From assembly GCA_964187785.1 (NCBI GenBank), contig OZ076414.1, positions 4,402,001 through 4,466,000 on the forward strand: DNA of 64,000 nucleotides. The letters are read 5' to 3'. This DNA comes from Amphiscolops sp. MND2022 (taxonomy: Eukaryota). Under the pieces are notes generated by a model that saw nothing but the letters and a program-made list of their open reading frames with translations, made no database searches and was not told where the DNA came from. A program made the translations under genes and the position numbers. This document shows, piece after piece, positions 454 through 23,137 of this stretch; position 1 is the first letter of the stretch, and every line of letters starts with the position of its first letter.

Positions 454-1082
454 GAGCGTGGAGATTTGGCAGAATTTGGAAAAAACCGCAACACAGATGA
501 TGATTTTCCTCCCCATTGAAAATGTGGGTCGGAAAATAAAAATACTTGAAATCACTGACATTGGAACTAAATCATCAGGTGTAGACCAAAATCGTGGATG
601 AAAAATTCTTCAAGAATTCCACATGAAGCCCGATTTATTACAACTTTGCTACCATTTTGCTGTCTCTACAAGAACATGTGAGTAAAGGAGTGAGATAGTT
701 TGAAAATTTTGTTTCAATTGTTCAAGTGAATATTAATGACAAGACAAATAATTTTAAACCCACACCAAAAACTCACAATTCTGACGTTCACAATAACGAT
801 GGTCTATTTGTATGATTTCCCTTTATATTTTCCAAATAACGGATTTATATAAACAAAGCATTATTATTTGACAATCAAGTAGGATTTGTTGTTTTAATGA
901 CCCTAAATAAACATTCTAACATTCTAATCATACCTTTACTTCAACCAATCAAGTTTCAGAGCATTTAGAGCGTTCAACGCGTTTTAGGACCATTTTTGAA
1001 GAAAATTTGTTGAGCTGCTGTGAGCTGTGAGTTATCATCATAGAATTACTGGGGAAGACAGAAATACACTGCCAGAGAAGCA

Positions 1083-1217
1083 TTACAAATCAAAACATCC
1101 TTTGTGGTAGTAGCAAGTGTTGTAGCAATTCTGTACGTTCGCCACCTCACAAAATCTTTCACAATATGCAAAGCAATCCCATTGCGCTTGGCTTCTTCGC
1201 TTCTCAAGCTGGATAGG
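1083..1217 (-). CDS. Last coding exon of a putative secreted cysteine-rich peptide precursor
   Basis: Acceptor TTTTTCAATTTTTCCAG ends at 1218. Phase-0 reading gives PIQLEKRR-SQAQWDCFAYCERFCEVANVQNCYNTCYYHKGCFDL*, a KRR site followed by six Cys. Candidate ATTAAA at 898-893. Confidence 0.75.
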   Translation of the reverse strand, partial: PIQLEKRRSQAQWDCFAYCERFCEVANVQNCYNTCYYHKGCFDL

Positions 1218-1973
1218 CTGGAAAAATTGAAAAATAGTTAGGTACAGTTAATTACAACTAACACTTTGCGAAGTGTCATGAACGTGCAACACTTTCAGAG
1301 AGAATTGCGAACAATCGAAACTGTTCTACGGTATGTTCGGAATCAGTACCAAGTTGGAACCACAGCATTACTGCATGGTACCTCATGTAACTTAGCTGAG
1401 GCGACGAAAACAAAGAAAGGGAATCATACTAGTTGATCAATAGACGGTTTGCATTTTGTGTTTTTTTTCCTTGAATGGCACACAGTCAAGTGTTACTAAC
1501 AATTGTATTCTTTGGTGGCAGGACTAAATAACCAAAGTCAAAATAGCCAAGGTCAAAATAGCCAATGCCATAATATCCAATATGCCAAAATAGCCAATGC
1601 CAAAATAGCCAATGCCAAAATAGCCATTGCCAAAATAGCCAATACCAAAACAGCCAAAGTGACACTATAACCAACAAGAACAAAGCAGCCCAAACTAAAG
1701 CAGACTAATTACAGTTAAATCTCTAAGTAATGCCAGGCTTGATTAACGTAATTGCTATAATGACATTCTGAACGAACAATTTTATTGAAATACTACAAAC
1801 AAAAGTGTTTCAACGTATTAAACATCAATTTTGAATAGAAACCATGATTAATAGCAAAAAGGTGAGAATGGGGAAGCTAAGATCGAAATTCAAGATTGTT
1901 TCATTCATCATCGAATCATTTCAATAGCAAAGTAGTCTTATAAGTTGATTTCGATCTCAATATCATATAAGCA

Positions 1974-3406
1974 ATGGAACCAGAACTTACTTGGGGAACC
2001 ACCCAGAAAGGTCAAAAGTTGATTATTTTCAATGGCAACGAGTTCACAAAAAAACTCGCTACAAAAACAACAACACACTGGAGATGTTCAAAATGGCGCT
2101 CACATTCCTGCAAAGCAACAATTGTCACTTGTGCAGATCGTATGCTTTCAAGTAAAAACGATCACAGCCACGATATTGTACCTGGCAAACCCGAAGCACG
2201 GCAAATTGTTGAGAGAATGAAATTTACCGCTAGAAATGAGCAAGATCCTGTTATTTCTGCAGTAATAGCAACACAAGTAGCAACGGTTGATGAGGTTTCT
2301 GTTCAATTGTCCATGCCATCGCGGTCAGCATTGAATAGGGCTCTGAACAGACAGAAGCAGAAGAACAATGAAAGCAGTAAGATTGCCATAACTTGCACAG
2401 AGAGGAACTTTGCCTTACCTGACGAGTACAAGGACTTCTGCCTGTTCGATTCCGGCATGGATGACAAGGAAAGAATTCTCATTTTTGGCGATGCAACAAT
2501 GGTTGCAGCATTGTCCACGTACAAAAGCCTCTGGTTATGTGACGGGACATTCAAAATTTGTCCTCTGCAGTTCTACCAACTTTACCCAGTGCATATTCAA
2601 TTGGGGGGCTTCTATCCACCGTGTGTTTACGCTTTGCTCAGCAATAAAAAGGAAACGACTTACCAACGGTTTATCGCAGCACTTAAAATGCTGACGGGTG
2701 ACTGTGAGCCCTCCCGTATCTTAATCGATTTTGAGAAAGCTGCTCTAAACGCTTTCACCCAAATGTATCCTTCGTCAAAAACAAGTGGATGCTATTTCCA
2801 TCTCTGTCAAAGTTTCAACAGAAAAATTGGTGAGCTGGGACTCAAAACAGTGTACGAAAACTACCCAGATTTCGCTTTGAGTCTAAAAATGATTCCTGCG
2901 TTAGCCTTCGTTCCCCCTGAGGACGTGGAGCCGTGCTTTAACTTGGTAATAGAAGAACTTGGCAAGTCATTGGACCAGCTCAACTTAGAAGACACAGTAG
3001 CGGAACAAACTGATGACTTGGCAGGGTATTTCCAGAGAACATACATAAAAGGCGAAAAATTAGGTCGGACAGAGAAGAAGCCGACGTTTTCTGTAGAGAT
3101 TTGGAATCAAAACCGGGAGTCATCAGACGGTTTGGTAAGAACTACAAATGCAGTTGAAGGCTGGCATTTAGGAGTGACTGCTCTTTTCCACGGAAGCCAT
3201 CCTCCAGTTCCGACATTTTTGGCCAAAATCAAATTAGACAGTTTCAACCAGAAGTTCAACTTCTTGAAGGCAGCTACGGGCACAGTGAATAAAGGCCGCA
3301 AAAATACCGCGAAATAGACGAGAAAATTTTTCGTCTAGTTAATGATTACAACCCTGATGCTCCACTGAACTTTTTGATGGCTATCGCTCATTTAACCCAT
3401 TCATGA
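1974..3406 (+). CDS. FLYWCH + MULE transposase; C-terminus frameshifted near 3302
   Basis: FLYWCH-like TQKGQKLIIFNGNEF...HWRCSK...CKA...HSH. MULE motifs WLCDGTFK, CVYALL, ILIDFEKA, GCYFHLCQ and RTTNAVEGWH. The ORF stops at 3317, but another frame continues KYREIDEKIFRLVNDY...FLMAIAHLTHS* to 3406. Confidence 0.92.
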
Positions 3407-3644
3407 TCCAATTTGTTGTGTAATTACTAACTATTTAAAATTAGTATATATTAGAAAAACAAAAACCTGCGTTTTCTCCCGAAATAAGAGGAATTGAGAG
3501 CTCAAAATTTGGCACGTGAATCAGGGCGATATTAGGGTTTTTTCGTTTCCCCTCCCGCCCTTTCCCGATTTCCCCAACCCCCGGAAATAGGGAATTTTGG
3601 GAAATCGGGAACTTCCGTTCATCTTTTTTTTTCATAAAATGGCA

Positions 3645-3705
3645 AAGACTAGGCTCGAACTCGGATAGTTTACTTCAGAAGCAGTTCTTTGACCACTAGG
3701 CCAAA
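3645..3705 (-). pseudogene. tRNA-derived (Gln-CTG-like) segment, possible SINE head, inside the MULE
   Basis: Minus strand shows A-box TGGCCTAGTGG (3703-3693), a TTCTGAA loop, and ATCCGAGTTCGAGCC with a B-box (3660-3652). No acceptor-stem pairing. Confidence 0.45.
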
Positions 3706-4556
3706 TTAATAATGTGTTCAACGATTGTTCACAGTATTCTATCAACGGTTGTTTCATATTGTTTCCATGCACGAAAACCGAAACGCGTAATAGATTTTTG
3801 AATTTTCTTCCCTTTCAATATTTGTCAACAAGTCAATAAAAATGCTCTGAATTTATGAAGCTTCTACTGTCAATCAAAAATTTTGACAGGTCTTTACTGC
3901 TGTTTGTGCCTTTTCTTTTCAAGTGCATTCAATGTGACTGAAAACGCACCAGTTCAATCAATCAAATTGTTTTAGGTCAATGCATTGATCTGCTGTGAAA
4001 AATTTTCTCACGCATTTATGTGCGATCCCAAAGTTGCGTCATCAATTGTTTCATTTGTTCAAACTAATTAGTTCAAGACGCTTTTCATCTACTCTAGCGT
4101 TGGTTATTATGTCACATTGGCTATTATGTCACGTTGGCTATTTTGGCATTGGCTATTTTGTCACGTTGGATATTTTGGCATTGGCTATTATGGCATTGGT
4201 TATTATGACTTGGGATATTCTGACATGTAACCGTATTCTTTGTATTCCTTCAAACTGGGTGAAAATACTACAGGAATGGTAAATGGTTCCGACGTACAAA
4301 AAGAAAAGGTGAAAAAAACCTTGTTTATGAAATTAGTTAAACAAACATTTTCTTGAATTAAAGCTTTGTGAATTGTACTTTGTATTCAATGATCATTTAC
4401 AATAGTGGTAAAACCAAAACTCCAGTATGGTTCGAAAAAGATGACGAAACAACTTGCGTTGGAAAATTTATTGAAATCTCGTCAATTGAGAATGATCCTC
4501 ACAACTGAATTTGCTAAATTTCTTTGAAAAAAAAACAATCAATAGTTGTTGCGTAC

Positions 4557-4643
4557 CTTGTGTCGCGGGTTCACTTCAGCAACAGCAGCGTAGTTGAAGA
4601 GCAGCATCGAAAGAAAGCAGAAGGTAAGAAGGTTGGTGGACAT
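4557..4643 (-). CDS. First coding exon (signal peptide) of the same peptide precursor
   Basis: Acceptor TTTGTTTTCAG ends at 4660. ATG in TTCAAG-ATG context encodes MSTNLLTFCFLSMLLFNYAAVAEVNPRHK, a hydrophobic core ending in AVA. Donor AAG|GTACGC at 4556 is phase 0 and joins in frame to the 1217 exon. Confidence 0.75.
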
Positions 4644-6366
4644 CTTGAATTTAATCACTCTGAAAACAAATCATCAGATTCAGCATTTGCTCACAGTCCC
4701 AAAATATCTTTCGTGTTTCTGTGCCTGATCAGACAGTGAGACCATCCGGAGTAAACTACCGCAAAGTCATTGGAAATCACCTACTAGACTCAGGGGAAAA
4801 ATCATCATGATCAATCCCCAAACAAGCAAAAAACTATTGCCGAAATGGAAAAAGTTCCCGAAAAATTTGGTTCATGGAAACCCTTCTGGCTTTGAGCAAA
4901 AATGCAAACGTTTCAGAGTTGTTTTGCTTAGATAAATCAAACGCAGCAGTTTTCGATTCTTTAGCAATTTTTCTAAAGCGAGAGTCTCTTGTTTGCGCAA
5001 AAACTGCAGGTAAAATAGCACATCAGTCATTACACAAAGCAACTGAAGTTTGAATTACCTTTTTACTGGAGTTTCGCAATTGAACTTTTGTTTGAAAAGA
5101 AAGCATACATTTGATCTGGGACGTACGGTGTTTTTTTACCACGGCGACAGTGTTGACAATAATTTCTGGCGTTGAACAAGTGCAGGATCGAGTCTGAGGA
5201 TAACAAGTGCGAGCGACTTTCAAGACTTGAACACTCAGGAGAATAGCGTGTTTTTTTTATTCTAGTGCACTCTAAAACTTCTGTCACTCGAAATGTTTCT
5301 GCTCATATCAAGTTGCAAATTAAGATTCGTGTCTTTAAATCATTGCCGGTACTTTCATGTAACAAACTGACAATACATATTGAAAATCAGAAAAAAAGTC
5401 CAATTCAAGGTTTTCAGTGAACAATTTTCGGTGGTCAAAAACAGAAATTTAAGAACTTACTTGATATAGGAAGAAAAATAGAGCGACTATTCCCAATCGT
5501 TTTCGAGCGCAAATTAAGTGCCTCTTTTAATTTTCTTAAAGGAAGATTTTCTTTGACTTTTATTTTGATAGCACATTTTATCTGAGGACCATTTCAAGCT
5601 GTTAAGTTTGATGACCTTTCAAGTATTATGCGCAAGCTGTTGAATTTTCGTATGATAATAATTCTTCCGAGTAAATGAAGTCTCCTGATATATCAGATGA
5701 AGAATTAAAACTTCGAATACATCAAATGTTCAGAGTGTACTTTTTACTCTTGCAAGTTGTAAATATAGTTTGGTATGTTTTTGAAGTTTCAGAAATGGTG
5801 GCAGAAGTGCTTTTTTGGTGTAGCATGACGAACTAACGATGCACTCATGCGGTTTTTAACAACTTTTTACGAATTCTCAAAGTACTCCACAATTGTTTTC
5901 TAAAAAGTACTTTTATTTACTTCTAAGCATTTTTTCTACCAGCCGTTTTTGTTGCCTTTGCTTGGTTTCTTGAACTTTTTGCTGCCTTGCTTCTTCAAGT
6001 TGCCTTTTTTAACCCGGAAAATTGAAAAAAAAATTGTATAGCTTGAAATCTAGCATAAGGTGCTTATACCATCTGGAACAGCTAAGCCGTTGGTATTGTT
6101 CTGGACTAGCTACACTGAAAGCATCAGGCACAATGCCTGGAAACCATTGGGGTTATTGTTCAATCGTAGACGTAACTCAGGCGAGCTGCTAGGTATGTGA
6201 TGGTAAAAAGACCGCGCAATATTCCGTCAAAACCAACTATTAGGAGTCTTCAAATTGAAAGTGAACGGAGTAAAATTCGTTTCACTAAGGAGAAAGCGAA
6301 GGTTCAAAAAAGCGTTCCCATTTGTAAAAGCACGCTAAATACGAACTTTGATGTTATACTCGAAGC

Positions 6367-6890
6367 NNNNNNNNNNNNNNNNNNNNNNNNNNNNNNNNNN
6401 NNNNNNNNNNNNNNNNNNNNNNNNNNNNNNNNNNNNNNNNNNNNNNNNNNNNNNNNNNNNNNNNNNNNNNNNNNNNNNNNNNNNNNNNNNNNNNNNNNNN
6501 NNNNNNNNNNNNNNNNNNNNNNNNNNNNNNNNNNNNNNNNNNNNNNNNNNNNNNNNNNNNNNNNNNNNNNNNNNNNNNNNNNNNNNNNNNNNNNNNNNNN
6601 NNNNNNNNNNNNNNNNNNNNNNNNNNNNNNNNNNNNNNNNNNNNNNNNNNNNNNNNNNNNNNNNNNNNNNNNNNNNNNNNNNNNNNNNNNNNNNNNNNNN
6701 NNNNNNNNNNNNNNNNNNNNNNNNNNNNNNNNNNNNNNNNNNNNNNNNNNNNNNNNNNNNNNNNNNNNNNNNNNNNNNNNNNNNNNNNNNNNNNNNNNNN
6801 NNNNNNNNNNNNNNNNNNNNNNNNNNNNNNNNNNNNNNNNNNNNNNNNNNNNNNNNNNNNNNNNNNNNNNNNNNNNNNNNNNNNNNNNNN
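6367..6890. other. Assembly gap (N run)
   Basis: Continuous Ns. Confidence 1.
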
Positions 6891-8200: not shown

Positions 8201-10006
8201 TGAAAGGAGGGTGAATGATCTATTGTAGATTATAGGTATTGATCATCCGACCGGGTTTTGAAACAAATAATATCTCCAACAAGTTGGGTTATCAGAGATG
8301 GGTCGGTCAAGCATGTGAATGTATATTCGAGGTTTGTTTTAATCGGTTGAGGTGGTTTGAGAATTTTTCAATTATTTATCCTTGGATTTGTATATGTTTA
8401 ATATTTTCATCAAGTTGTAGTACATCAAATTGTATTATTCTTTCCTTACGTGAGGTTCGGGCGAAAATGAAATTTTTAATGTGAGTCCAGTTGAAAGGAA
8501 CGGAATTAGGTTTTCTTTTTCAAATTTAGTTGGAGTGAGGTTTTTAAAAGGTATAGGGATTGGAATAATTATAGTTTGACATATCTTTTTCAAGTTTTGG
8601 CATATCAGTTTTTGGGAGTTTTATTCACTTTTTAGCTATGTATCTTCCGTGGACGCTTTGAAAGTTTGTCAAGTGGAGACAATGATTGACAAGTGAAGGC
8701 GAGGCGAGAAACAGCGACGAGTGGCGTGGAATGAGCAGAATGTGAAAAGGGACGTCCTTGCTGACAAACATTAAGTTCTTGAAAGACTAGGATTCTTAGT
8801 TTTCATGTCAACTTTCATGCATTTATCTTATGCGTCTTTTTTGTGAAAACCAAAAATAATTTAATTTGAGATGCTTCTATATCAAGAAGGCGGCCTGGAC
8901 AAAGTCAAACAGTGCAAAAAAAGGAATTCTTTGTCAATATGTGTTCTTATTTTGATCATGTGAGACGGGTAAAAGAGTAGAAAAAATGCATTTGGAAGTG
9001 ACCATTGAAATTCTCATTTGGTTAAAAATCGAACGTAGAGGTGAGTAACGTTCAATATGTGAACTAGTAGAAGTGAAATGGAAGTTAAAACGCGGTTAAG
9101 ACCGAAGTTATGGAGGTGTAAAGTTAAAATCTTTTAGAGAATTGGGTAAAAAATGGAGTTTCGTTTAAAAAATATATAAAAAGGAGGTGAATATTAAAAA
9201 AAGAATACCAGCACCACATTTGTAGTTGAATTAGGTTGCAAAGAGCAAGCTAATATAAAAAAGCCAGACATGCATTGCGTAAAATTGAAATTGGAGGGGT
9301 ACAAAGTTGAAAACAGGTATGCCAAAAAACCAATATTTTACCACTTTTGTAAATAAAATAAAAAATTACTACTGTCACAGCCGCCACAGGGCCGTGAAAT
9401 AATAAGATCAGTGAGAACGCCAGAGGAAAGAAATGGAGAAATTAACCAAGAAGAAGCTAATAAAGCATCACAAACCTGAAAGAAAACAATCAACAAACAA
9501 ACACTCATTGATATTGAACAACCCTGTAAGTGCATAATATTAATATCATCAACTCTCTGCAGTACCTGAAATACATAAATATGTAAATAATTAAATAATA
9601 ATAACTTGTTGTAAATGTGATTTGTTTGCAGTAGCTTGACCAATACGCTGATTGAAGTTATTCCAACCAGCGCACTGACCAGCCTACCGTCCCAATATCT
9701 GCGTAACAAAACACACTAATTCTCACTGTCCTTTTAATTAACCAATCAGCGCTAAGCGCGAATGTGCAGTATTAACTCAGTTACTCTACTCGTCAAGCCA
9801 CCAGTCAACAAAGGCTGGGACGCACGCCTGGCAGCTCGATCGAATTAATCAAAGTGCTAATATATTAAGTGACGTCACGCGTGAAGTGAATACAAATCCA
9901 AAGCTTAGAAGAAGCTTAAATTATGCAGTATTCAATAATGAAGATAGAAAACGTAATATTTATAGTATGAAAAGGTGTGTTTGAAGATTTGTCGATCCTG
10001 ATAATT

Positions 10007-10230
10007 GGGACGACCGCCGGGACGACCGTTTTAAATTTATAATCTGGGACGACCGCCGGGACGACCAACTTAAGTTGAATGAAGCAGTAAAGTATCGAGT
10101 ACCACCAGATAGTAAATCACCGCACTAATATATGTAAATGTACTATCCTAATATTGTATGGAACGTCACAAATTGTCCAAATCTAGTGAAATGATGATTA
10201 ATCATAATTTGAACCGGGACGACCACCTGG
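10007..10230 (+). promoter_or_regulatory. GGGACGACC repeat cluster in U3 (enhancer-like)
   Basis: Four GGGACGACC copies at 10007-10066 arranged as two GGGACGACCGCCGGGACGACC doublets, and a fifth near 10215, in otherwise AT-rich DNA. Mirrored in the 3' LTR. Confidence 0.5.
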
Positions 10231-10870
10231 GCAACAATTTAAATAATTAATGATGTACCAAGTTCGAATGAGTTATTAATAACGTTATGATGGTTATTAA
10301 TTGTTTAAAATACCATGTTTGTTAATGGAATGAAGTTTATTCCCCCGCAACCGCCTAATCAAGTGATATTAACCCCCCTTTTTCATCTGTTAACCTATGC
10401 ATTCACCCCGGTCACCCGACTTTATATATGTGTTGTGTCTACCGGCCAGGCGCACGTTTTGTGTCTAATTTGTCAAGATGCGTCAATCCTAACCATCGAT
10501 ACCTCAAAAGTTGTAATTATCATCTCTAACTCTGTTGATTCAATAATTTGTGCAGTTGCCTTATACTTAATTGTCCATTTTCTCTTAAAGAAAATTTCGT
10601 TTCCTTTTCCCGCTTCAGTAGCTAGGTTCATGAATTTCAGTGCCAACTTCACCTTCGGCGTCTTGAAAAGGCGGGGAATGAAGAAGAAAGGGACGCGGAA
10701 TTGGGAAGCGGCAGGAAGTGATTTCCCACTTTTCTTTAAAGTGGGTTGAAACCGAATGCCGAGTCCCGAGGAAGAATACCTTATTTGGATTTCCCCGCTT
10801 CGGAAAGGACGCCGAGGTGAACAAGGTGTGAATTCACGCGCGGGGTTTTCCCCGCGTGTCTAGCGTAAAG

Positions 10871-10906
10871 TATAAATACCTGAAGCGGGATTAGGAAAAG
10901 TTAGTT
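10871..10906 (+). promoter_or_regulatory. LTR core promoter: TATA box and initiator-like element
   Basis: TATAAATA at 10871-10878 and TTAGTT 30 nt downstream at 10901-10906. Confidence 0.6.
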
Positions 10907-11104
10907 GACAATTTGATTTTTCCAAGTGCGTTTGATTAATCATTCTCCGGAAATTTTGCTTTTGTAATAATCGTGTTAATTACTTTTGCTTAGTATAATT
11001 CCTTTGTTTCGAAAAACTTTGACAAATTACTGAACTGAAGTCTCCATTACGTTTGTAACGACTCAAGTTTAATTGGATTATTGTCTCTCCACTATTTTTG
11101 CAAG

Positions 11105-12523
11105 ATGCCTGAGAAGTCTCAAAAACGAAAGTTGAGGAGTGACCAGTCGACTAGCCAGTTCGACATAGAGACCGCAAGCTCAATTAACGACGAAAACGCG
11201 GTACTTTCGGAAAGGGATTTTGAAGACATATCTAATAAAATTGAGAATAAAATTTCCAAGCGTCTCAGAGACACTGAACTCAATCAACGTGAGATATTAA
11301 AATTGATCGAGAGCCTGTCGTCCAAAGTTGACAACCTATCGAGCGTCAATTCTGAACAAGGTTACTTGACGACCAGGACCGAGAATAGTGGAAACCCCAC
11401 TGAAGAACTAGAAGAAGTTAGTTTGTCTAGGAACGAGAGTTCCAACATGGTGACAGGAGTAATTAGCGAACCGACCTCCAGCAACACCACCCACCCCCGA
11501 TCTTCGAGCCTGCCGCCTCCAAACCAGAGGCACTCCGACGAAATCATCGACAAGCTGTTAGAATCCCTGTACGCAACACAAAAACAGACAGCACAATTAC
11601 CCCGTCTACCAAAAGCGCTTGCCACGACAATGCCAACATTCGACGGTAAAAACGAGAAGTTTGAACTCTTCGAAGATTTGTTTCAAACAAGCTTGAAGGT
11701 CCATCCCCAAATAACGGAGCAAGAGAAAATACATTATTTCCACTCCCTACTGCGAGGAGACGCCTTGCAAACCTTTCGGAACATGACCGAAACAACCAAA
11801 ACCAACCTGAACGACATCATCGCCGGATTCAGACGACGATATGTAAAAACCCAGTCAATAGCCACTGCTAGGTGTAAGTGGGAAAACCTCACATTCGACC
11901 CGGCGAACCAAACATTCCAAGATTTCTTGGAGAACTACCAGAAACTTGCCCAAGAGGCATACGCCGACGATGCACCCCGCTTTATAGAAACCTCCTTCTA
12001 CGCAAAAATGCCGATACATCTCAAAAGAGTGTTAAATCAAGCACGCCTTGAAACAGCATCATATGAAACGATGGTCCAGCACCTAGAGCGGGAGATGGAG
12101 CTCAACGGATTGGCAAATCCAGAATCCACTACATTTACCGGCATACACAATGTCGAACCCGCCAACACATCCAACCAGGAGAGACACCCGAAAACTGCAA
12201 GCACGTGCTTTGGCTGCGGACATCAGGGCCACCTCCTCCGCAACTGCAGGAAGACAAACCGAGTCAAACGGAATCAAAAACCCCCCAGCAATAACATCAC
12301 CGACCCCTGCGAAACATGTGGCAAATTAAGCCACGAGACTAAAGACTGCTATTCTGGGGCGAACTGGGCAAACCGCCCTACATGGTGGAAAACGCCTAAA
12401 CCAACAGGCGCCAACAGTATACCCCTACCACAACAAACTGCACCCGAAACTATACAACAACCTTCAGCAAATCAGCAGCCACAAACCGTGGCACAACCAC
12501 AATACCAGCCAAAAAACTACTAA
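11105..12523 (+). CDS. gag: Gag (472 aa from the first AUG), with two CCHC zinc knuckles
   Basis: Capsid-like MPTFDGKNEKFELFEDLF...LRGDALQTF; knuckles CFGCGHQGHLLRNC and CETCGKLSHETKDC. The first 114 codons lie inside the LTR. Confidence 0.93.
   Translation: MPEKSQKRKLRSDQSTSQFDIETASSINDENAVLSERDFEDISNKIENKISKRLRDTELNQREILKLIESLSSKVDNLSSVNSEQGYLTTRTENSGNPTEELEEVSLSRNESSNMVTGVISEPTSSNTTHPRSSSLPPPNQRHSDEIIDKLLESLYATQKQTAQLPRLPKALATTMPTFDGKNEKFELFEDLFQTSLKVHPQITEQEKIHYFHSLLRGDALQTFRNMTETTKTNLNDIIAGFRRRYVKTQSIATARCKWENLTFDPANQTFQDFLENYQKLAQEAYADDAPRFIETSFYAKMPIHLKRVLNQARLETASYETMVQHLEREMELNGLANPESTTFTGIHNVEPANTSNQERHPKTASTCFGCGHQGHLLRNCRKTNRVKRNQKPPSNNITDPCETCGKLSHETKDCYSGANWANRPTWWKTPKPTGANSIPLPQQTAPETIQQPSANQQPQTVAQPQYQPKNY
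11448..11460 (+). other. Primer binding site, tRNA-Leu-like
   Basis: TGGTGACAGGAGT directly follows the LTR end; one mismatch to the Leu-type PBS TGGTGTCAGGAGT. Confidence 0.65.
12511..12517 (+). other. Candidate -1 ribosomal frameshift heptamer (gag-pol)
   Basis: A AAA AAC is in the correct gag phase two codons before the gag stop. The -1 frame is open from here into the protease ORF. Confidence 0.75.
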
Positions 12524-12603
12524 AGCCACGTCTTCGCTTCGGGGATTACACCGACTTCAGATACTACACCATCTCTGAACCCCCGAAGGACTTCGACAAG
12601 GAA

Positions 12604-14397
12604 TTGTTTATGGAATGCTCAGGTGAACCATCGATCGACTGGCAGCGACGATGGCTCATAAGACGCATCATCAAGTTCAACAAAAACACCCTGGACAAAC
12701 TCCCCTACCCAGACTGGTACACCCAAAACCCCACCCAATACAACACAACACGCAGACCATTACTTCCCAGCTCCACACCCGAAACTTACATCTACGACCC
12801 CGACTTCGAATGCGACCCCTACTACAACGATACTCTATATGACTCAACAAACCTTGTCTTCAGACAGTCAATCAACGTACCATTTCATGAATTCATAGCC
12901 AAAACCAACATGGACATCTCGACAACTCCAAAAAGGAAAGACGACCTCAGTCATACTCCCGAACCTCAGGCTGAAGAAGAACACGACACAGAAATCACCG
13001 TGATCGTAACACCTCCAACGACTTCCCTCAAGTCAATCCTCAAACCCAACAATCAACCACCACTGGTTGACTTCCAGTCACCCACGAAACTCCCAGCCAC
13101 CTCCAATGAAATCCGGGCAGCTATGACGTCGTCCCCCTCCAGTCCAGAGAGTCCTGAACATAAATACTCCACCCCTAAAACCCTGGTTGACGACACAAAA
13201 GCCGGGGACCAAACAACTGCAAGTCAACCCACAACAAAACCGAGAACTCGCCGCGTCAAACGAACTCTGACCTGCGAATTCAACCAGCAAACAGAAGCTA
13301 AAACAGCGACAAACAGCCCACTTATCACTACCCAAACCTCAAGAGAAGAGCCAACCAATCTAGAACAAGATGAAGAATGGATTCAAACCAACAAACAATT
13401 GAATGAAATTGCAATTACAGACCCAGAAACAAGCGAAAAATGCATACCAATTTTTTCGGCCATCAATCTGAAAAAGAAAAGGAAAATGCTCTTCGCCCCG
13501 ATGGATTTCAACAACATTTCAGTCGATGCGCTTGTTGACTCCGGAGCACTCGTCAACTGCTTACCAGAAAGCGAATTTCAGAAAATCAAAGCAGTAAGCC
13601 CAGACAACATCCTCAAGGAAATGGATCCACCAACATTTAAATTGCAGGTCGCAAACGGCGAGATAGAAACCCCCACGAAAACAGTTCAACTACAATTTGA
13701 ACTAGGCGACTGGACGTTGAAAGAGACGTTCATCGTAGCCATAAAGATGACAGGACCCATCCTCGGACTAACGTTTCTCAAAAACAACAGCGCAATCCTC
13801 GACGTCAGTCAGGCCCTCTTACATTTCCCACACCTGACATACGCAATTTCTGCAGACGATAACGAGACAATCTCAAGACACCATAAAGTCACTACCAAAA
13901 CCCAACTCACCATCATGCCCGACCAGTGTGTAACAATCGAAGCCGGCATCAACCTACGTACCCTGACAAACACCACAGGAATCATCAACCCTACTGAACC
14001 ATACTCCGGAGAACACCAACTGGTAGTAGCCAGCTCTCTATCAACGGTTACAAACTCCAAAATCGAAATCAGGGTTACCAACACATCTCCAAACCCATTC
14101 ACCCTCAAAAAGAACACAAATCTCGCAGAATTCACCATTCTATCCCCCCAGGAAGCCAAGCAACTCCACCCACTCAACTCTGCAGCCCTAAAGGTATTAG
14201 CAGAAGACGATTCCGAACAGGCGCTAGAATATGTAAACGAACTCCTCAAATCGTCTGAAAAGCCCCAGACGGTTCAAAATTTCTGGTTCCCCACACCGGA
14301 CAACCCAGGAGACCCATCAACGCACACACCTATCCAGAGCAGGATACTGAGAGAGGATAGAAGAACTGGAAAACATCCAGAAACTCAATCCTCATGA
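12604..14397 (+). CDS. pol: Pol segment 1: N-terminal extension, aspartic protease, dUTPase-like region; frameshift near 14354
   Basis: Protease ALVDSGALVNCL and ILGLTFL. The reading continues in another frame (IEELENIQKLNP...) into the RT ORF. Confidence 0.9.
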   Translation: MFMECSGEPSIDWQRRWLIRRIIKFNKNTLDKLPYPDWYTQNPTQYNTTRRPLLPSSTPETYIYDPDFECDPYYNDTLYDSTNLVFRQSINVPFHEFIAKTNMDISTTPKRKDDLSHTPEPQAEEEHDTEITVIVTPPTTSLKSILKPNNQPPLVDFQSPTKLPATSNEIRAAMTSSPSSPESPEHKYSTPKTLVDDTKAGDQTTASQPTTKPRTRRVKRTLTCEFNQQTEAKTATNSPLITTQTSREEPTNLEQDEEWIQTNKQLNEIAITDPETSEKCIPIFSAINLKKKRKMLFAPMDFNNISVDALVDSGALVNCLPESEFQKIKAVSPDNILKEMDPPTFKLQVANGEIETPTKTVQLQFELGDWTLKETFIVAIKMTGPILGLTFLKNNSAILDVSQALLHFPHLTYAISADDNETISRHHKVTTKTQLTIMPDQCVTIEAGINLRTLTNTTGIINPTEPYSGEHQLVVASSLSTVTNSKIEIRVTNTSPNPFTLKKNTNLAEFTILSPQEAKQLHPLNSAALKVLAEDDSEQALEYVNELLKSSEKPQTVQNFWFPTPDNPGDPSTHTPIQSRILREDRRTGKHPETQSS

Positions 14398-14470
14398 CAG
14401 CCCTGAAGACAGAGCAACTTTCTTATCCAATTTCAAGTGGACGGATTTACAACTCAGTGATGAAGACAAA

Positions 14471-16024
14471 ATGGACATAGAAGCAATCCTTGTAGAATAC
14501 AACGATATCTTCGCAAGGCACCGCCTTGATATCGGAATCAACAACGAATTCAAAATAAAGCTCACCCCCAAATCCGAACAGCCAGCGTACACTCAAAGCC
14601 TACCCTGCCCAGTCAACCTGAAAGACGACTTGACAGTCGAATTGGCGTTAATGCACTACTACGGCATAATCACCACGCTCCCTTTCAGCAAGTACGCAAG
14701 CCCAATATTTGCCCAAAGAAAACCAAACGGACGCCTACGATTGCTAGTTGACTTACGAAAGATCAACAACCTCATTTCCGACGATTATATAAACAATAAT
14801 CACCCTGTGAGCACCCTCTCGGATGCAGCTCAGCATTTAGCCGGAAAGAAACTGTTTTGCAAGCTTGACTGTTCTCAAGCCTACCACGTCCTGCAAATGG
14901 CAGACCAAAAATCAGTGGAACTCCTGGCGTTCAACTTTGCCAGTCGGACATTCGCCTACCTGCGACTCGCACAAGGGCTCAGCAGATCTCTCTCCTCCTT
15001 CTCGAGCTTTATGCGGGAGTATCTTGACCGAGTCATCAAAGCCGACAAGTGCGCCCAGTACGTCGACGACATCGGGATAGCTACCCATACTGCCGAGGAG
15101 CTGAAGAACAACCTGCGTGAGGTCTTTCAGTGCATAAGAGAAGCAGGTCTGCGTCTGACAATGGCTAAATGCCAGTTCGGTGCCAAGGAAGTCGAATTCC
15201 TTGGACGAACGTTCTCACCCGAAGGAATCGCCCCACAGAGTCACAAGATCAAGAACTACCTCCAAAAACTGTCGTTCCCAAAAACCAAAAAGGGCCTCCA
15301 GAGGTATATTGGTTTCGTTAATTATTATCGGAACTACATACCTCGCCTCTCCGAAAAGATAGCACCCTTCCACGAATTAGTCAAGGCAGACAAAGCAATC
15401 AAGATCACAAACGAGATCATCGGGGCATTCGACAACATCAACAAGGCACTTGACAACGCTTGTGGGCTATGGCTGAAACAACCACTACCCAACAAACAGT
15501 ACGTCCTCATGACAGACGCGAACTTCAAAAATGCAGGCTACGCCCTCATGATTGAAGAAAACGCTGATGAAAAACTGACCTCAGTTAAAAAGACTTACGC
15601 CCCGGTAGCGTTTGGTTCCAAGACATTCTCTCCGTCCCAAATCAAAATGTCAATATATGCCAAAGTATTCTTGGCTATATATTTCGCCTTCATGGAATAC
15701 AGCCACATATTGTGGGGATCGACCAAACCGGTCATCGTCCTAACAGACAACAAGTCCGTCACACGGTTTTTTCAAACCAAAATAATACCACCAGCTTTGT
15801 GGAACGCCTGCGATTTCGTCCTACAATTCAACTTTACGATCGCCCACGTCCCAGGGCGCATGAACACCGCAGCTGATTTTCTTTCCCGACTTGACCTAGA
15901 CCGAAAGGAAAAAGTCCAACTCTTAATCCGAGACGACATTCAAACAGCACCAATAGAGGTACACATTCAATCCTCCAACGTCGCAGAACGTTCTCCAACA
16001 GTTCTACTTCCTCCCCGACGATGA
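14471..16024 (+). CDS. pol: Pol segment 2: reverse transcriptase and RNase H; frameshift near 16000
   Basis: RLLVDLRKIN, KLDCSQAYH, LAQGLS, YVDD, FLG; RNase H MTDAN...TDNKS...ADFLSR. Confidence 0.95.
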   Translation: MDIEAILVEYNDIFARHRLDIGINNEFKIKLTPKSEQPAYTQSLPCPVNLKDDLTVELALMHYYGIITTLPFSKYASPIFAQRKPNGRLRLLVDLRKINNLISDDYINNNHPVSTLSDAAQHLAGKKLFCKLDCSQAYHVLQMADQKSVELLAFNFASRTFAYLRLAQGLSRSLSSFSSFMREYLDRVIKADKCAQYVDDIGIATHTAEELKNNLREVFQCIREAGLRLTMAKCQFGAKEVEFLGRTFSPEGIAPQSHKIKNYLQKLSFPKTKKGLQRYIGFVNYYRNYIPRLSEKIAPFHELVKADKAIKITNEIIGAFDNINKALDNACGLWLKQPLPNKQYVLMTDANFKNAGYALMIEENADEKLTSVKKTYAPVAFGSKTFSPSQIKMSIYAKVFLAIYFAFMEYSHILWGSTKPVIVLTDNKSVTRFFQTKIIPPALWNACDFVLQFNFTIAHVPGRMNTAADFLSRLDLDRKEKVQLLIRDDIQTAPIEVHIQSSNVAERSPTVLLPPRR

Positions 16025-16472
16025 CATTGAAACCGAAGAACAAATTTGGGAGAGGAAGCAAAGAGCCCGCAAGAAGATTCTAGGGAACGACACCCCACCA
16101 ACGCCAGGAGAAGAAGCAAATAATGAAACAGTCCAAACAGAAGACACCACAGTCATATTTCAAACGGAAATAACAATACACAACAAAACCACCGAAGACC
16201 AAGAAAACACCCTCCCAACTGACATGCGACACCAACAGGACCAAGACAGTGTCCTCAGAAACTACAAACTACGCCTCCTCAAAGAACCATATGATGAACA
16301 CCTGATGGCCACAGACCACAGAGCACTCCGTTACACAGCGCAAGAATCGAGAATCATACTCAAGGACGGACTGCTATACCGGCAGTAATTCGGAGAAACC
16401 GGAACAGTCAAACACCTGCAGGTACTACTCCCGGAGCAACTGGTCGACTCCTTCATCGAGGCACACCATGGA

Positions 16473-17891
16473 ATGCACAACAAACACCCGGGAATAACGA
16501 AAGTAATACAACAATGCAGAGAAAAGTATTACTACCCAAGTCTCGCAGCAAGAATAGCCAAACATATCAACCAATGCATGAAATGCATGCAAACAAAACG
16601 AACAGACAATCGCCTCCTAACCCCACCAATGATCGACACGTCCAAACTGGCAATGGGACCGGAAGATGCCCTACAAATGGACATTGTCCCCATCGACGAG
16701 CCATCCAACGGATTCACAGCGATAGTCACTGCCATGGACGTCTTTTCCCGCTACCTATTTACCTATTGTGTCACCAAAATAGATGCCCGCTCGATCGCAA
16801 GAGTACTGGTAGACATAATGACAAGACATGCTTACCTGCCCACAACGATCATAACTGACAAAGGAACACAATTCATGTCCGAAGTAGTGGCTGACACCAC
16901 ACGCGTTCTAGGCATCCAATTGAGACACGCGACTACAAAACATGCCCGAACAATTGGTATCCTAGAACGCTGTCATGCATCATTAAAAGAAGCCCTGAAA
17001 ATATCAACAGGAGAAAGGAGAACAATGTGGCACCAGTTCGTACCAACCGCCGCACTAAACTACAACACAACCTACCACTCAGCACTAGGGTGCGAACCCA
17101 GTAGAGTATTCCATGGCAGAATACCATACAACGTGCTTGACTTAAAGTTCGGTCTCAAACAGAGCCAAACCCAAAACCCAAAAACAGACATAGGCGAAGA
17201 AGTCGTCCAGAAGACCCGGATGATACACCAATCAGTAACCAAACACCTCCTCCACTCCTACATACGGTACAAACAGTACTACGATAAAAAAGCTTCTGCC
17301 CACCCCCTAGCAGCAAACGACTACTGCTACGCCTTACACCCCCAGGCAAACAACCAGGGATCGAAACTACCTTTCCGCGAGTATTTATGGACAGGACCAT
17401 TCGTAGTAGTTAAAACCCTTCCCAACAATAACTACCTAGTTCGTAAATTACAAACGAACAAGACCCAAATTCTACACAGGATACGACTGAAACCATGCCC
17501 CACGAAAAATCGCCTTCCCGATATACAAGTTCAAACCAAGGACTTTCAACCAGACGATGAAGTTGAAATCCTACATGATGACCTATACGCCCTAGCCTGG
17601 CAATCAGGGTTTGAACACTTCGTGATGACCCATAACCACGATTCCAACAACGAATCGGCAATCAACCCGACCGATAGTCATGACGTCTTAGAAAACATTG
17701 CCCAGGATGACACCCACCATATCCTAAAGGAACCCCAACCCGACCAACAGGAAATCGCACCCGAAATCGACCCTAACCCAGAACCCAGTTCTCCCCGGAA
17801 AGGAAAATACAACCTACGCAGTAACCCCCCTTCAAATTGGAAAAGAGATTATGCTTATTACGACTCCGTGGTCGTTGACGCAAGCGAATAA
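16473..17891 (+). CDS. pol: Pol segment 3: integrase (HHCC, DDE, GPY/F); in-frame TAA upstream near 16386
   Basis: H-x4-H (HGMHNKH) ... CMKC; QMDIVP, IITDKGTQF, GILER; WTGPFVV; C-terminal KYNLRS. Confidence 0.95.
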   Translation: MHNKHPGITKVIQQCREKYYYPSLAARIAKHINQCMKCMQTKRTDNRLLTPPMIDTSKLAMGPEDALQMDIVPIDEPSNGFTAIVTAMDVFSRYLFTYCVTKIDARSIARVLVDIMTRHAYLPTTIITDKGTQFMSEVVADTTRVLGIQLRHATTKHARTIGILERCHASLKEALKISTGERRTMWHQFVPTAALNYNTTYHSALGCEPSRVFHGRIPYNVLDLKFGLKQSQTQNPKTDIGEEVVQKTRMIHQSVTKHLLHSYIRYKQYYDKKASAHPLAANDYCYALHPQANNQGSKLPFREYLWTGPFVVVKTLPNNNYLVRKLQTNKTQILHRIRLKPCPTKNRLPDIQVQTKDFQPDDEVEILHDDLYALAWQSGFEHFVMTHNHDSNNESAINPTDSHDVLENIAQDDTHHILKEPQPDQQEIAPEIDPNPEPSSPRKGKYNLRSNPPSNWKRDYAYYDSVVVDASE

Positions 17892-18192
17892 ACTCTTAAA
17901 ATGAATTCGTGAGATGGTACACTGACTACCTACTCGTTTATTACTACATACTCAAGACAAAACGATTATCAGGAGCAAGATTGTATTACAACACACTCCA
18001 CAGACCAAGGAAGACCTAGCCTCCTCATTTTTTTTCTGGACTATGAGCTCTTCTATTTTCATTCCAGTTTTCTCTGGATAATACTAAATCAGAGATACAG
18101 ACAACAACAAAGGATGAAAGACAAATTTACAAACTCTAAATGAAAAGTACCCGAAAGCACAAACGGTTTAACTCAGTTTCAAGCGAACTTCA

Positions 18193-21100
18193 TCATTTGC
18201 GCCGTCCTTTCCCCTTCTTACTAGGGGTTTTCGACTTCGAACTTTCCACAGTAGACAACACTTTACGCTCTTCTCGCGTCTTCTGCAGGATGCGCGTCAC
18301 ATCACTAGACCGGCCAGGACTGAATAGCAAAGCAGACTCGTCAAATGCAGCAACAACAGGTCGAGGTGGAGTAACGGGAGACGCGAATTTAGCTGTACTA
18401 CCACACACTTGACCACCCGATTCGTCTCCGGAAGGGGTAACGTCACATGAAGGGGACACACTTGAACCAACAGCGCTAGTCAGCGACATTTTTGGCAACG
18501 AACTCATTCGCTTCCGCCAATCATCCATCCGCTCCAGGAAATAGGCATCAAACCGATCTCGTAAACTGCGATACAAATCTTGATAGCCCAGACAATACAA
18601 CGACGACCAGGGAGCGAAACTAGCATCCCCTAAGAACGAACGACCAGCAGGCAGATTCACTCTTAGATCATCCAAGCAATCCTTGGTCAACAACTCCCCA
18701 GAAGTAAATCCGGAAAACGAAACATAAGACTGTACTGTAAAGACAGCTGACATCAAGATCTTCCGAGGCACTGCAACCCCACTCAAAGAAATGTCAACCT
18801 CAGCATAATCCACAACACGAGGAACTACAAGGACGGATGACAAAGACACTACACGAGCCAAACTTCCCCGACATGCCAAAGCCTCCGACTGACGCAAATA
18901 ACTAAATATGTCTTTAATACTAGACACCACCTGCCGATTACTCCGCCGAATCTCCACCAGAAAAGACTTGAATTCATTGCAGGCACTTTCAGAATCAATG
19001 ACAGTCAGCCGACCACACTCCTGATAACAGGCTACTAAGCCCCGGAACAGTTCAATGGCATAAGACTCATCTCCCAACAGAAGCATGTCAGGAGAGAGGC
19101 AACTCAGATTTGATGCCAGACGGGAATCCATGAAACACGAACTGTTCAAAACTTTGAGGAACTCCATCATGAACCCATAGCCCTCCCGAAGGAACGACTT
19201 CCGAATAGCTTCGGGGCTCCCAGCCAAAACAGAAGCGAAAAGGGGCTCAGTTTTCAGACACTCCACGTAAGAAACAGTTGACCACGTGGTGAGCGGCCGT
19301 CCAATATATGCGCTCCAATCACCAATCTCAGGCAACTCAGATAACTTCTTGACTTTACTGAGCAAACTCCAATAGAAGAAGCAGAACTCAGCATACCCAC
19401 GACAACTGTAATCAGTAATCGCTTGAAGAAACTGCTTTTCAAAATTCGCTTGGAAACAGACAACAACCACATGTAACACGCACAAACGTGGTAGAACCCG
19501 TGCATCTGCCAAAACCATCTGATTTAAACCAAGTGGAGTTCTGCCCCGGGAGGAAGTTGACGCAATACCATCACTCAAGAACAGCTTGATATCACTCCAA
19601 TGCCCAACAATCTCCTCCAAGACCGCCCTGAGAGAAGCAAACGGGATGTCATGCCCCAGGATACACTTTCGGAGCGTCACTAATCCCATCATCCACGGCT
19701 GATTTAAACCCCGCCCCAATCGCAGCATCAGGTAGTCCAGCAAGGCAAAAGGATCTAAAGAAGTATTACCAACTTTTGCTGCCTCTTGCACGTGCTCTTT
19801 CAAGTTCTCAGGAGTATACTCAGAAACTAGCATTGGCTTGGGCCGACCTTGGGACTCACACCACTCTCTCACAACATTGAACAGAGTTGCTGAACAACCA
19901 CGCAGAGCCACTGGCGACTGATCTGCAGGAAGAAGCGCGAAAATCCGACTCAAACCAACAATCTCGGCATCACACAGCCCAGGCAGCTCAGGCTCCCATA
20001 GCACACAAATCTCTCGCAGGGAGTCATACGATACACAATAAACGAAGAACTGAAATCCATCATGATGTTTCCTCACACTCACACTGAAATCTGAGTCTTT
20101 AATCCAAGTCTGTACACGCCGAAGAATACGAGGGTATAACGTCTGCCCCAGGATAACCAAGGACTCAGTTTTGCTCCATGTTGCTTGAGCACAGTTGGAC
20201 TCCACCGGCAAGGTAGCTCGGAATTGATTCCAGATACGCCTCAAAAACATGTGTGAACCACCACTGCGTAATAATTCGAACAGACCACCAACCAGCACGG
20301 ATGAAGGGACATTCGACTCAACTCCCACCAAAGCATCAACTTCGTCTTCGACAAAGGGATTCTTACGCCCCAAAACAACTGCTGGCGTTTTCTCTACTTC
20401 AGCGCGCAACTCTGCCGATATCGAAGCAACGGGCACCTCATCAAAGCTCGTCGTGTACAGGAATTCCTCATGATCCAGACGATAACGGCGATCTTTCAGG
20501 AAATGGCCCTTACTGCCAAAGTGACGCCAGATCTCGGGCTCACCGACTGAGGAATGAAATGTCCCGTTTACAAATGGCGCAGTTGAAACCGCTGGGACCT
20601 TTATCCGAGCGACGACTGACGAACAAACGAGGACATGCATGGTCAGCCATCTCTTTCCGCAACACATGACGCTCTGTCTGCTGTTTCTTACGCCTCTCGT
20701 ACTTGGCATACAGACGCTGTTTAGTGGTCTCCTCTGCACTCAGCTGGGTCTGGGCACAATGCATATGGATACCCTTAGACTTCAGCAAACGCACAATCTG
20801 CTCCAGACCTAAAATACAGGATGCACCATATATAAAAGCAGCGATGGAAGACAGTGAACTAGAACTTAAAAGAATGACCAACAAAAAGAAACCAAAACAA
20901 TAGAACAGCAACTACAAGCCACTAAAAACAGGACCCAAACAGGGAAAGGAAAACTGAAACTACGGAAACAAATAAGGACTTACGACGTGTCAGAGTTTGC
21001 TCTTTCCGTTGATCACGACTCCTCTCCAGACGTACTGCAGCCTGACCGAAAGCCAACACCTGAGAGGACGACAGACATACTGCTCCAGTAGGCACTTCAC

Positions 21101-22186
21101 TGAGTCCAGCTGCAAAATACAACGTGGTCAAAACCAAAGGAATAGTCCGAGATAAGCTACATGCAAAGAACAAGCCGCAAAAAAAAACAAAAAAAAACAA
21201 AAATAGAAAAAGAGGGAAAGGGGAGAGGAGAAGAAGTAAACAACTGATAACCTTTCGCCCATTCATTGTGGACGATAGACCGCTCAAAACCCGTCGGCGG
21301 CCGTGTGTGCGAAGTCCTCTCCAAACGAGGCAAGGGCTCCTCAGTAGCACCTGAACCGACCACATCATCAACAATAGCGGCAGTTCCACAGATACAGGCA
21401 CCAGAAAGATGCTCACATGATGCAGAAACCTCGCCACCAAGAACATTGAGTGAATCGCCTAAACGAAACCAGACACATTTTCATCTAATAAGATACCCTA
21501 ACACAACCAAGACACACGAAATACCTACCGGCAGAGGGCAGTTCTCCTGGTGCATCCTCCCCGACCATGTCCCCACCAGCACCAACACCATCAGAGACAC
21601 GAACACGCTTTGAACCAGTTGCTGAGACAGCGGAAGACAACCGCTTCGCGCGGCGACCAGTCGACCCAGCACCATCAAGGATGAAGTCCTCATCTTTGGA
21701 ATCATCACTATGCCCTATAACAACCGGTAGAAGAATGACGCGTCTGTATTCTAGCAAATCGACGTTAACTGGCCACTAATGTCATGCTAAAGAACTTACC
21801 ATATTGGTCGTGCAGGAAATCGAGATCATGCCGTGCGTCACTCCCTGAAGAATGGACAGAGGCATCATCATTATCACCGTCATCATCTAGATCAGTCAGC
21901 TCATCATCGCTCTCCTCGATCTCACCGAAACCAGACCGCGGTCTGCGACTTCCTTCCCACTAGCAGCTGATGAACCAGGTCTTCCCACTGGACCTTCTTC
22001 AGAAGACTCCACAATACACAAAGTGTTCTCCTCGCCAGAACTAGCATTACCAGCCCCACTAACTTCTCCACTCGACACATCGACTCCAACAGATTCACCT
22101 CCTATATCTCCCACATCACTCTCAAGAACGCCCACCTGGCGAGAACGCAAGAAACGAGCAGCATCCTCATCTGTTGAATCTGCCAT
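18193..22186 (-). CDS. Antisense five-exon gene (~1170 aa), hAT-transposase-like C-terminal portion; two frameshifts in this copy
   Basis: Coding exons 22186-21800, 21714-21529, 21458-21252, 21109-20984 and 20808-18193. All four introns are GT-AG and phase 1; internal exons are 186, 207 and 126 nt. C-x2-C-x16-H-x5-H finger reconstructed across a frameshift near 20542; a second frameshift near 21937. Confidence 0.82.
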
Positions 22187-22486
22187 TTCAAATTCGTTTC
22201 AATCAGCAACACAATCTGAAAGGTACCATAACATAACATCAACGAAATCAAAACGAAGACGTGGCGTAAAACCAACGCTAATATTATTATTACAAACTAA
22301 TAGTATGACGTAATTGAAGTCATTCAGTCTGCCAGCTGAAAACTTTCCCATTCATGCAAGCGGCGTGAACAGAAGAAAAGAACGGAATTATCATTCAATT
22401 ACTCGACCATTCCGCAGAACAGCCGCTCAGCATTACTTACAAGTATTACTATTCATTGCATACAATTTATTTACTCATCGGATCAA

Positions 22487-23137
22487 ATGAATTCATCGAC
22501 ACTCAATTCCTCAACCGATTATTTCATTTTGGACCGCGACCAAGACGCTGCCCCAGTAAACCCCTGCGCACATTCAACACCTAAAGCGCTTGGTGATAAT
22601 TGCGAAAATACCCAGTCACTGATCATTGAAGACATTTACGAGATTATCAATACTGGGACAGAACATATTGTCCTTTACCATGAGTCGGCGCCGATATCTA
22701 TCCTAGAAACAGCCCAATCAGACACATTACCATCCAGGAAATTTACAAACTTCAACCCAATTATCCCGGATGACGAATTCATGAGCCCTCCGCGAGACTA
22801 CGAACACATGGATAATTGGCTATACAGGCCACACGATGGGTCAATCAGCCCAATATCCAGCGACTCCAGTTCCATCGGTTACTTCTCAGGAAGCTACTGG
22901 ACAACCGATTCGTCCTGGATGTCTTATGATTCAATGGTACAGTCTATATTTCAACCCCCAATCTCTTCCCCATTCAGGCCAATTTCACCACTTCTTCCCA
23001 CAATGGACGTCTCTCATCAAAGCCGGGGACTGTCACAGCCGCCACAGGGCCGTGAAATAATAAGATCAGAGAGAACGCCAGAGGAAAGAAATGGAGAAAT
23101 TAACCAAGAAGAAGCTAATAAAGCATCACAAACCTGA
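22487..23137 (+). CDS. Extra sense ORF (216 aa, S/P/D-rich) spanning the PPT into the 3' LTR
   Basis: Uninterrupted 651-nt ORF with an ATG start; the last ~107 nt are LTR sequence. No recognisable domain. Confidence 0.5.
   Translation: MNSSTLNSSTDYFILDRDQDAAPVNPCAHSTPKALGDNCENTQSLIIEDIYEIINTGTEHIVLYHESAPISILETAQSDTLPSRKFTNFNPIIPDDEFMSPPRDYEHMDNWLYRPHDGSISPISSDSSSIGYFSGSYWTTDSSWMSYDSMVQSIFQPPISSPFRPISPLLPTMDVSHQSRGLSQPPQGREIIRSERTPEERNGEINQEEANKASQT
23019..23030 (+). other. Polypurine-tract-like sequence
   Basis: AAAGCCGGGGAC lies immediately before the 3' LTR TGT. Confidence 0.55.

Follow-up and report, generated by a model that had tools for sequence, protein, structure and literature searches.

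The window analysed in this study, that is, the whole stretch of 64,000 nucleotides taken from contig OZ076414.1 of Amphiscolops sp. MND2022 (assembly GCA_964187785.1, positions 4,402,001 to 4,466,000), contains near one end a candidate gene for a small secreted peptide with six cysteines. The candidate lies on the minus strand between 4643 and 1083 and consists of two coding exons. An earlier reading of the DNA, here called the original prediction, had spliced position 4557 to position 1217 and obtained a product of 73 amino acids. The coordinates, the junction and the sequence of that product were all reproduced, and the 222-nt spliced coding sequence (CDS) on the minus strand matches the earlier translation exactly. 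All positions below refer to the window unless another sequence is named.

The candidate gene and its predicted product

The coding part of exon 1 (4643-4557, minus strand) comprises 87 nt or 29 codons and carries the predicted signal peptide together with the first 7 residues of the propeptide, while exon 2 (1217-1083, minus strand) comprises 44 codons followed by TAA. The start codon of exon 1 is the ATG at 4643, which stands in the context AAG ATG T with an A at position -3. The donor of exon 1 reads AAG/GTACGC, with GT at 4556-4555, and the acceptor of exon 2 consists of a tract with 10 pyrimidines in 12 positions followed by CAG, with AG at 1219-1218. Since exon 1 is 87 nt long, the junction across the GT..AG intron is in phase 0. 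The earlier statement that neither exon appears in the track of open reading frames (ORFs) was also found to be correct. Both are missing because the exon-1 frame is short, with just 39 open codons, and the exon-2 frame lacks an ATG, GTG or TTG far enough upstream to serve as a start.

The flanks of both exons are not repeated within the window, so that both lie in unique DNA, and membership of the exons in a repeat was rejected on this ground. Past the stop codon, matches to the consensus were noted for an ATTAAA polyadenylation-signal variant at 893-898 (minus strand, 184 nt past the stop codon) and for an AATAAA at 634-639 (minus strand, 443 nt past it). A 41/82-nt tandem repeat with 69-80% matches occupies positions 197-383, approximately 700 nt downstream of the stop codon.

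A possible 3' acceptor, TTTGTTTTCAG, with AG at 4661-4660 on the minus strand, is located 16 nt upstream of the ATG, and the nucleotides between the two (4644-4659, minus strand) may form a 5' untranslated leader. Judging from the sequence, this acceptor could serve for trans-splicing, or it could join the ATG exon to an exon further upstream, either a 5' non-coding or a coding one. It also bears on another way of reading the locus, namely that a real transcript exists and its gene model is a different one: an upstream coding exon could make the hydrophobic stretch internal, another splice pair could be used, or the gene could be young or decaying and yield no stable product. The acceptor is a good one and the frame of the ATG, open from 4658, stays open across it; in-frame alternative sites are present as well (a donor after 4575 and acceptors before 1208 and 1202), and the orphan status described below would suit a young gene. 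On the other hand, the remaining two frames at this acceptor meet stops at once, the interval from 4660 to the sequence gap that begins at 6367 shows no evident upstream coding exon, and all the alternative splice pairs retain the same signal peptide and Cys domain. Taken together, a different gene model appears distinctly improbable.

The original prediction had described a signal peptide, a short propeptide, a basic cleavage site and a Cys-rich mature peptide, and the translation shows this layout, with an N-terminus that is signal-like. The predicted signal peptide (4578-4643, minus strand) comprises residues 1-22, with an uncharged hydrophobic core of 12 residues and A-V-A before the predicted cut, and it passes a heuristic rule on the hydrophobic core and the residues at -3 and -1. 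The propeptide has 15 residues, contains no Cys and ends in Lys-Arg-Arg, a predicted proprotein-convertase site (1194-1202, minus strand) located six residues before the first Cys. Cleavage after Lys-Arg-Arg, which would follow established dibasic processing, would leave a mature peptide of 36 amino acids (1086-1193, minus strand). Its six cysteines, spaced C-x3-C-x3-C-x7-C-x3-C-x5-C as reported before, fall within the last 30 residues, and the stop codon follows three residues past the last of them. Eight of the 36 residues are aromatic (22%), and an isoelectric point (pI) of 4.75 goes with a net charge of about -2.5. The calculated mass is 4323.8 Da in the reduced form and about 4317.8 Da with three disulfides, and the predicted peptide lacks a C-terminal Gly-basic amidation signal. 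Because the peptide is acidic (pI and charge as given), a role as a classical cationic antimicrobial peptide is argued against and was rejected.

Structure prediction, which had been suggested as a check, was carried out with AlphaFold2 in single-sequence mode. The model of the 36-mer consists of a helix at residues 2-18, a 4-residue loop and a helix at residues 23-31, with a mean predicted local distance difference test score (pLDDT) of 78.9 and a predicted template modelling score (pTM) of 0.50. A control peptide, a chance Cys-rich 36-mer encoded at 57726-57833 on the minus strand, gave a single helix with pLDDT 64.9 and pTM 0.39. In the model of the candidate, helix 1 presents Cys 7, 11 and 15 on a single face, and helix 2 bears Cys 23 and 27 and is closely followed by Cys 33, so that each predicted helix carries CxxxC (C7-x3-C11-x3-C15 and C23-x3-C27). 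The remark in the original prediction that paired CxxxC motifs typify disulfide-stabilised helical hairpins agrees with this helix-loop-helix model and with the literature (PMC11722136; bioRxiv 10.1101/2020.05.26.118075). A disulfide ladder with three rungs suits the modelled Cys geometry, from which we infer such a ladder for the peptide.

If the gene is real, its product might mature as follows. Residues 1-22 would lead the chain into the endoplasmic reticulum, where signal peptidase would cut after A-V-A. Oxidation of the six cysteines would give three disulfides holding two antiparallel helices together, with C-x3-C-x3-C on helix 1 and C-x3-C-x5-C contributed by helix 2. The likely ladder would be C1-C6, C2-C5 and C3-C4, if the I-IV/II-III pairing known from twin-CxxxC hairpins is taken as the model. 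A convertase of the kexin/furin type would cleave after Lys-Arg-Arg and free the 36-amino acid hairpin, which could then bind a receptor or channel as an extracellular ligand.

The intron, its transposon and a second haplotype

The intron (1218-4556, minus strand) measures 3339 nt, and the original prediction had missed the cause of this length. Positions 1515-4232 are occupied by a 2718-bp DNA transposon of the FLYWCH-MULE (Mutator-like) type, oriented on the plus strand and thus antisense to the peptide gene. Its transposase ORF (1974-3317, plus strand, 447 aa) matched the Pfam families FLYWCH (PF04500, 1.2e-12) and MULE (PF10551, 6.5e-13), both above the gathering scores. The terminal inverted repeats, approximately 100-160 nt long and composed of 15-nt subrepeats, form arms at 1514-1675 and 4099-4232 that align over 99 nt at 83% identity and extend to about 160 nt. 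The element is bounded by a perfect 10-bp target-site duplication, with the left copy GTATTCTTTG at 1505-1514 and the right copy GTATTCTTTG at 4233-4242. A transposase domain, long inverted repeats and a target-site duplication within the range of 9-11 bp are thus all present, as expected for a MULE.

Other copies of the element, both from one ENA assembly, confirmed these boundaries. The copies on contigs L001 (8050-10786, 97.4% identical) and L003 (9541-12261, 98.7% identical) match the window from 1513/1514 to 4232/4233 and not beyond. At least 13 transposase ORFs fell into one cluster at 90% identity or more, all within one ENA assembly, and three of them encode 477 aa. With 447 aa, the transposase of the window is 30 residues short of this form; the lost end can be read in another frame, indicating one frame change. 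Relatives of the transposase were found among ENA, JGI and Logan proteins, with distant named matches in a mite and a microsporidian. The element is a discrete, recently active Mutator-like transposon.

Without the element, the host part of the intron amounts to approximately 611 nt (1218-1504, one copy of the 10-bp target site, and 4243-4556). The intron is 3339 nt long instead because the MULE was inserted, and an insertion into a formerly short intron makes the two-exon model more credible. The insertion point is approximately 290-310 nt from each splice site and leaves donor and acceptor untouched; a central position within the intron, in antisense orientation, is the arrangement least likely to disturb splicing. 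The general lesson is that an implausibly long intron became an ordinary one after a bounded transposon insertion had been recognised.

The same locus was found on a second haplotype, in ENA assembly ERZ25074608 (ctg185888, 424728-445678; the contig is 811 kb long with 103x coverage). It was reached through contigs bearing other members of the transposase cluster; exact look-up of five flanking and exon-1 ORFs and of the window transposase did not find an allelic or orthologous locus, and neither did a query with an alignment of two ORFs. Both exons are unchanged in this haplotype, with exon 1 at 13302-13388 and exon 2 at 8631-8765 of the extracted segment. Identity to the window is 100% over 1-1514, about 99% in the transposon region and 98.4% in the 5' flank. 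The contrast between the identical tract and the diverged 5' flank suggests, as far as the sequences go, a switch from a tract identical by descent to a diverged haplotype near the transposon. The intron of the second haplotype is 4536 nt long, approximately 1.2 kb longer than that of the window, owing to an internal tandem duplication that takes in the right part of the transposon together with its target-site copy, includes about 280 nt of intron sequence and ends before exon 1. In the window, positions 6367-6890 are a run of 524 N; the second haplotype spans this interval with 688 nt (15118-15805), after which the window sequence resumes. A Pfam scan of the neighbouring ORFs of the second haplotype gave nothing significant.

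Chance, relatives and the rest of the window

The precursor layout was sought with a scanner. A model had to begin with an ATG and a signal peptide by the heuristic rule, followed by a GTR donor and, no more than 5 kb away, by an AG acceptor rich in pyrimidines; its terminal frame had to span 25-80 codons and to encode at least six cysteines, even in number, with a dibasic pair before the first of them. On the 64-kb window the scanner returned only the candidate locus (six in-frame splice variants with one ATG and one terminal frame), and a further 49 kb of this genome yielded no such locus. The locus could still be a product of chance, in which a hydrophobic frame initiated by ATG and a Cys-rich frame stand in phase by accident in gene-poor, transposon-rich DNA and are neither transcribed nor translated. 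Its ingredients are common: the window holds 22 signal-like ATG starts, compared with 11 in shuffles, and 13 open frames with at least six cysteines in 36 aa, compared with 4.3 in shuffles, indicating that Cys richness alone is not unusual. Dinucleotide-shuffled windows contained some composite model in 55 of 300 and 113 of 600 cases (18-19%), and a Markov null trained on the non-transposon flanks (GC content 0.357) gave a model in 29 of 400 windows (7%).

The particular features of the candidate were much rarer. A model with an intron of at most 700 nt occurred in 30 of 600 shuffled windows (5%), one with at least two CxxxC in 8 of 600, and one with at least three CxxxC, as in the candidate, in a single window of 600. 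The Markov null supplied 31 chance loci, none of which had two CxxxC and 10% of which had introns of at most 700 nt, the range that includes the ancestral intron of the candidate (approximately 611 nt). The base composition of the coding sequence also differed from chance. GC content at third codon positions (GC3) was 0.368 +/- 0.038 and CDS GC 0.366 +/- 0.030 in the chance loci, whereas the candidate has GC3 0.54 and CDS GC 0.45, values reached by 0 of the 31. Exon 1, with a GC content of 0.494, ranks in the top 0.65% of equal-sized windows of non-transposon flank and gives way to 0.31 in the adjoining intron; exon 2 (GC 0.422) ranks in the top 13%. Two-fold pyrimidine-ending codons end in C 18 times and in T 11 times, in DNA where T is far commoner than C. 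The strong acceptor, the Lys-Arg-Arg placed just ahead of the first Cys and the confident two-helix AlphaFold2 model likewise argue against an accident.

Several further results weigh against a real gene. Remote homologues were sought with exon 2 (the end of the propeptide plus the mature peptide) or with its mature part as the query, and the conservation of the Cys framework in relatives, on which the original prediction had set store, was not observed in any of the collections. A word-index search of 5.8 billion clusters returned no homologue, and none of precursor size. With phmmer against 1.84 billion representatives a single hit was obtained and proved to be false, and phmmer against PDB sequences at E values up to 10 gave 0 hits. 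Foldseek against the PDB, a method that is weak on 36-residue queries, also gave 0 hits. No family was assigned to the candidate by Pfam, no match to its 54-codon open frame was found in JGI metagenomes, and no paper containing the peptide strings was found in a literature search. The paralogues proposed as a tBLASTn check were likewise absent, both from the window and from 62 kb of related loci. As for the gene itself, there is no TATA-like hexamer within 300 nt upstream, the n-region of the predicted signal peptide has no basic residue, and the signal rule is our own heuristic and no trained predictor. The AlphaFold2 comparison was made with one control. The freedom of exon 1 from differences between the haplotypes is of little help either: 31 difference events fall in 4233-6366 (1.45%) and none in 4539-4772, and a difference-free exon 1 is expected by chance with P of about 0.28, larger difference-free gaps being present elsewhere. 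This identity is compatible with constraint, judged from two haplotypes, and is not significant. The identity of exon 2 is uninformative because the whole of 1-1514 shows no differences at all. Finally, the rest of the window consists of transposons and retroelements, with no other recognisable host gene.

The false phmmer hit, a protein of 157 aa with an E value of 6e-4, was rejected as a homologue since its sequence is that of a translated tandem repeat, in which Cys recurs without the framework of the candidate. It illustrates the pull of short Cys-rich queries toward ORFs derived from repeats.

The negative searches are weakened because prokaryote-style gene callers, which depend on a start codon, never record the exon-2 frame from genomic DNA; a match to exon 2 could therefore have come only from an annotated eukaryotic proteome or from assembled transcripts. 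A transcript-derived precursor of 73 aa, however, would have matched in the word-index search, which returned none. The criteria of CxxxC number and GC3 were picked post hoc, after the candidate had been seen, and the genome holds thousands of such windows; the statistics are therefore taken for a likelihood ratio, with no claim to a P value. Combined with a roughly assumed prior of a few per cent per window, this ratio tips the odds modestly toward a real gene. An accidental juxtaposition of frames is regarded as a serious but rather doubtful explanation. We consider it probable, at roughly 0.55, that the locus is a lineage-restricted orphan gene on the minus strand, encoding a 73-aa prepropeptide from which an acidic, aromatic-rich hairpin of 36 aa with three disulfides would be released.

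If real, the candidate would be a further short two-exon gene for a secreted peptide that is invisible to annotation based on ORFs and on homology. Nothing would be overturned by it, as orphan Cys-rich secreted peptides are numerous in invertebrate genomes.

Elsewhere in the window, a BEL/Pao-like retroelement with long terminal repeats occupies 9371-25105. Its direct repeats of 2077 bp (9371-11447 and 23029-25105), 98.9% identical to each other, contain the start of gag, which indicates a second, truncated unit after the first. The gag (DUF1759), protease, reverse transcriptase/RNase H and integrase domains are spread over four ORFs, and at least three interruptions must therefore have occurred. 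An uninterrupted ORF of 848 aa lies antisense within this retroelement (18193-20739, minus strand) and has no Pfam match at E values up to 1. Another, decayed retroelement is present in two tandem copies on the minus strand (30666-37687 and 37447-44974), approximately 6.8 kb each and 85-90% identical. In this region, at approximately 26000-48000, the coding strand is extremely poor in G, with a plus-strand GC skew of +0.37 to +0.57 over 22 kb and little AT skew; the cause could be a strand-biased mutation process or the intrinsic composition of the element. Pao-like gag/protease fragments are found at about 55-61 kb, within a GC-richer block of approximately 14.5 kb that is flanked by tandem arrays of 51-55-nt units. 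These arrays, at 48304-48477 and 62655-62944, match each other (13-32 nt, 88-100%) in inverted orientation only, and to judge by this arrangement they may represent the subterminal repeats of some large element. An ungapped search gave no inverted repeat of 40 nt or more. Scans of the window for tRNA genes and Rfam families returned nothing. Both the splice signals and the assortment of transposable elements look animal.

Comparison with known disulfide-stapled peptides

Helical hairpins with twin CxxxC motifs have evolved convergently and recur as a scaffold among secreted bioactive peptides (PMC11722136; PMC13608440; bioRxiv 10.1101/2020.05.26.118075). Among them are the plant alpha-hairpinins and vicilin-buried peptides, which are described as having twin CxxxC with a I-IV/II-III ladder in a helical hairpin with a short loop (bioRxiv 10.1101/2020.05.26.118075; PMC4695807). 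Like EcAMP1, C2, MiAMP2 and Luffin P1, the candidate has twin CxxxC, a predicted helical hairpin and a short loop. The plant peptides, however, have four cysteines, are rich in Arg and Glu with few aromatic residues, and are excised from vicilin or multi-module precursors by asparaginyl endopeptidase, whereas the candidate has its own two-exon prepropeptide, a tribasic site, a high content of aromatic residues and an animal-like genome context.

Helical hairpins also occur in neurotoxin B-IV of Cerebratulus lacteus and acrorhagin I of Actinia equina, which have about 50-55 aa, eight cysteines and four disulfides. In one of the two, a disulfide reaches a loop. The candidate, with its six cysteines and no sequence hit, is not a member of this group.

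Among signalling peptides with three disulfides, attractin of Aplysia is a water-borne secreted pheromone with three intrachain disulfides and a single-copy precursor (PMC3484142). At 58 residues and with N-glycosylation it differs from the 36-aa candidate, to which it gave no match in the search of PDB sequences. Attractin has a two-helix fold, and its Cys spacing is unlike that of the candidate. Eclosion hormone and the ITP/CHH family are likewise secreted and helical, with three disulfides that include a CxxxC element; they are about twice as long as the candidate and have another Cys spacing. Membership of the candidate in these hormone families was not supported, as no Pfam family and no related protein were found.

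A further likeness is to the CS-alpha/alpha peptides, in which each of two antiparallel helices carries CxxxC and the helices are cross-linked across the hairpin (PMC11722136). Like the scorpion kappa-KTx (hefutoxin-type) peptides and conotoxin vil14a of framework XIV, the candidate combines a helix-loop-helix model with CxxxC on each predicted helix. Unlike these peptides, which have four cysteines and two disulfides, it has six cysteines: helix 1 gains one more CxxxC turn, and the sixth Cys comes five residues after helix 2. It has no sequence similarity to any PDB chain and no Foldseek match. The candidate is therefore at most a three-disulfide variant of the CS-alpha/alpha type and is not a member of the kappa-KTx, framework XIV or alpha-hairpinin families, membership being excluded because the number of cysteines differs and no sequence or fold match was returned.

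We tentatively suggest, at somewhat below even odds, that the candidate founds a family of three-disulfide helical hairpins not described before, a six-Cys extension of CS-alpha/alpha that would serve as an extracellular signal or toxin; a toxin, a pheromone and a hormone would each be compatible with the sequence. The CS-alpha/alpha scaffold arose repeatedly in toxins and defence peptides and has so far been reported with two or four disulfides, and a real gene at this locus would add a form with three.

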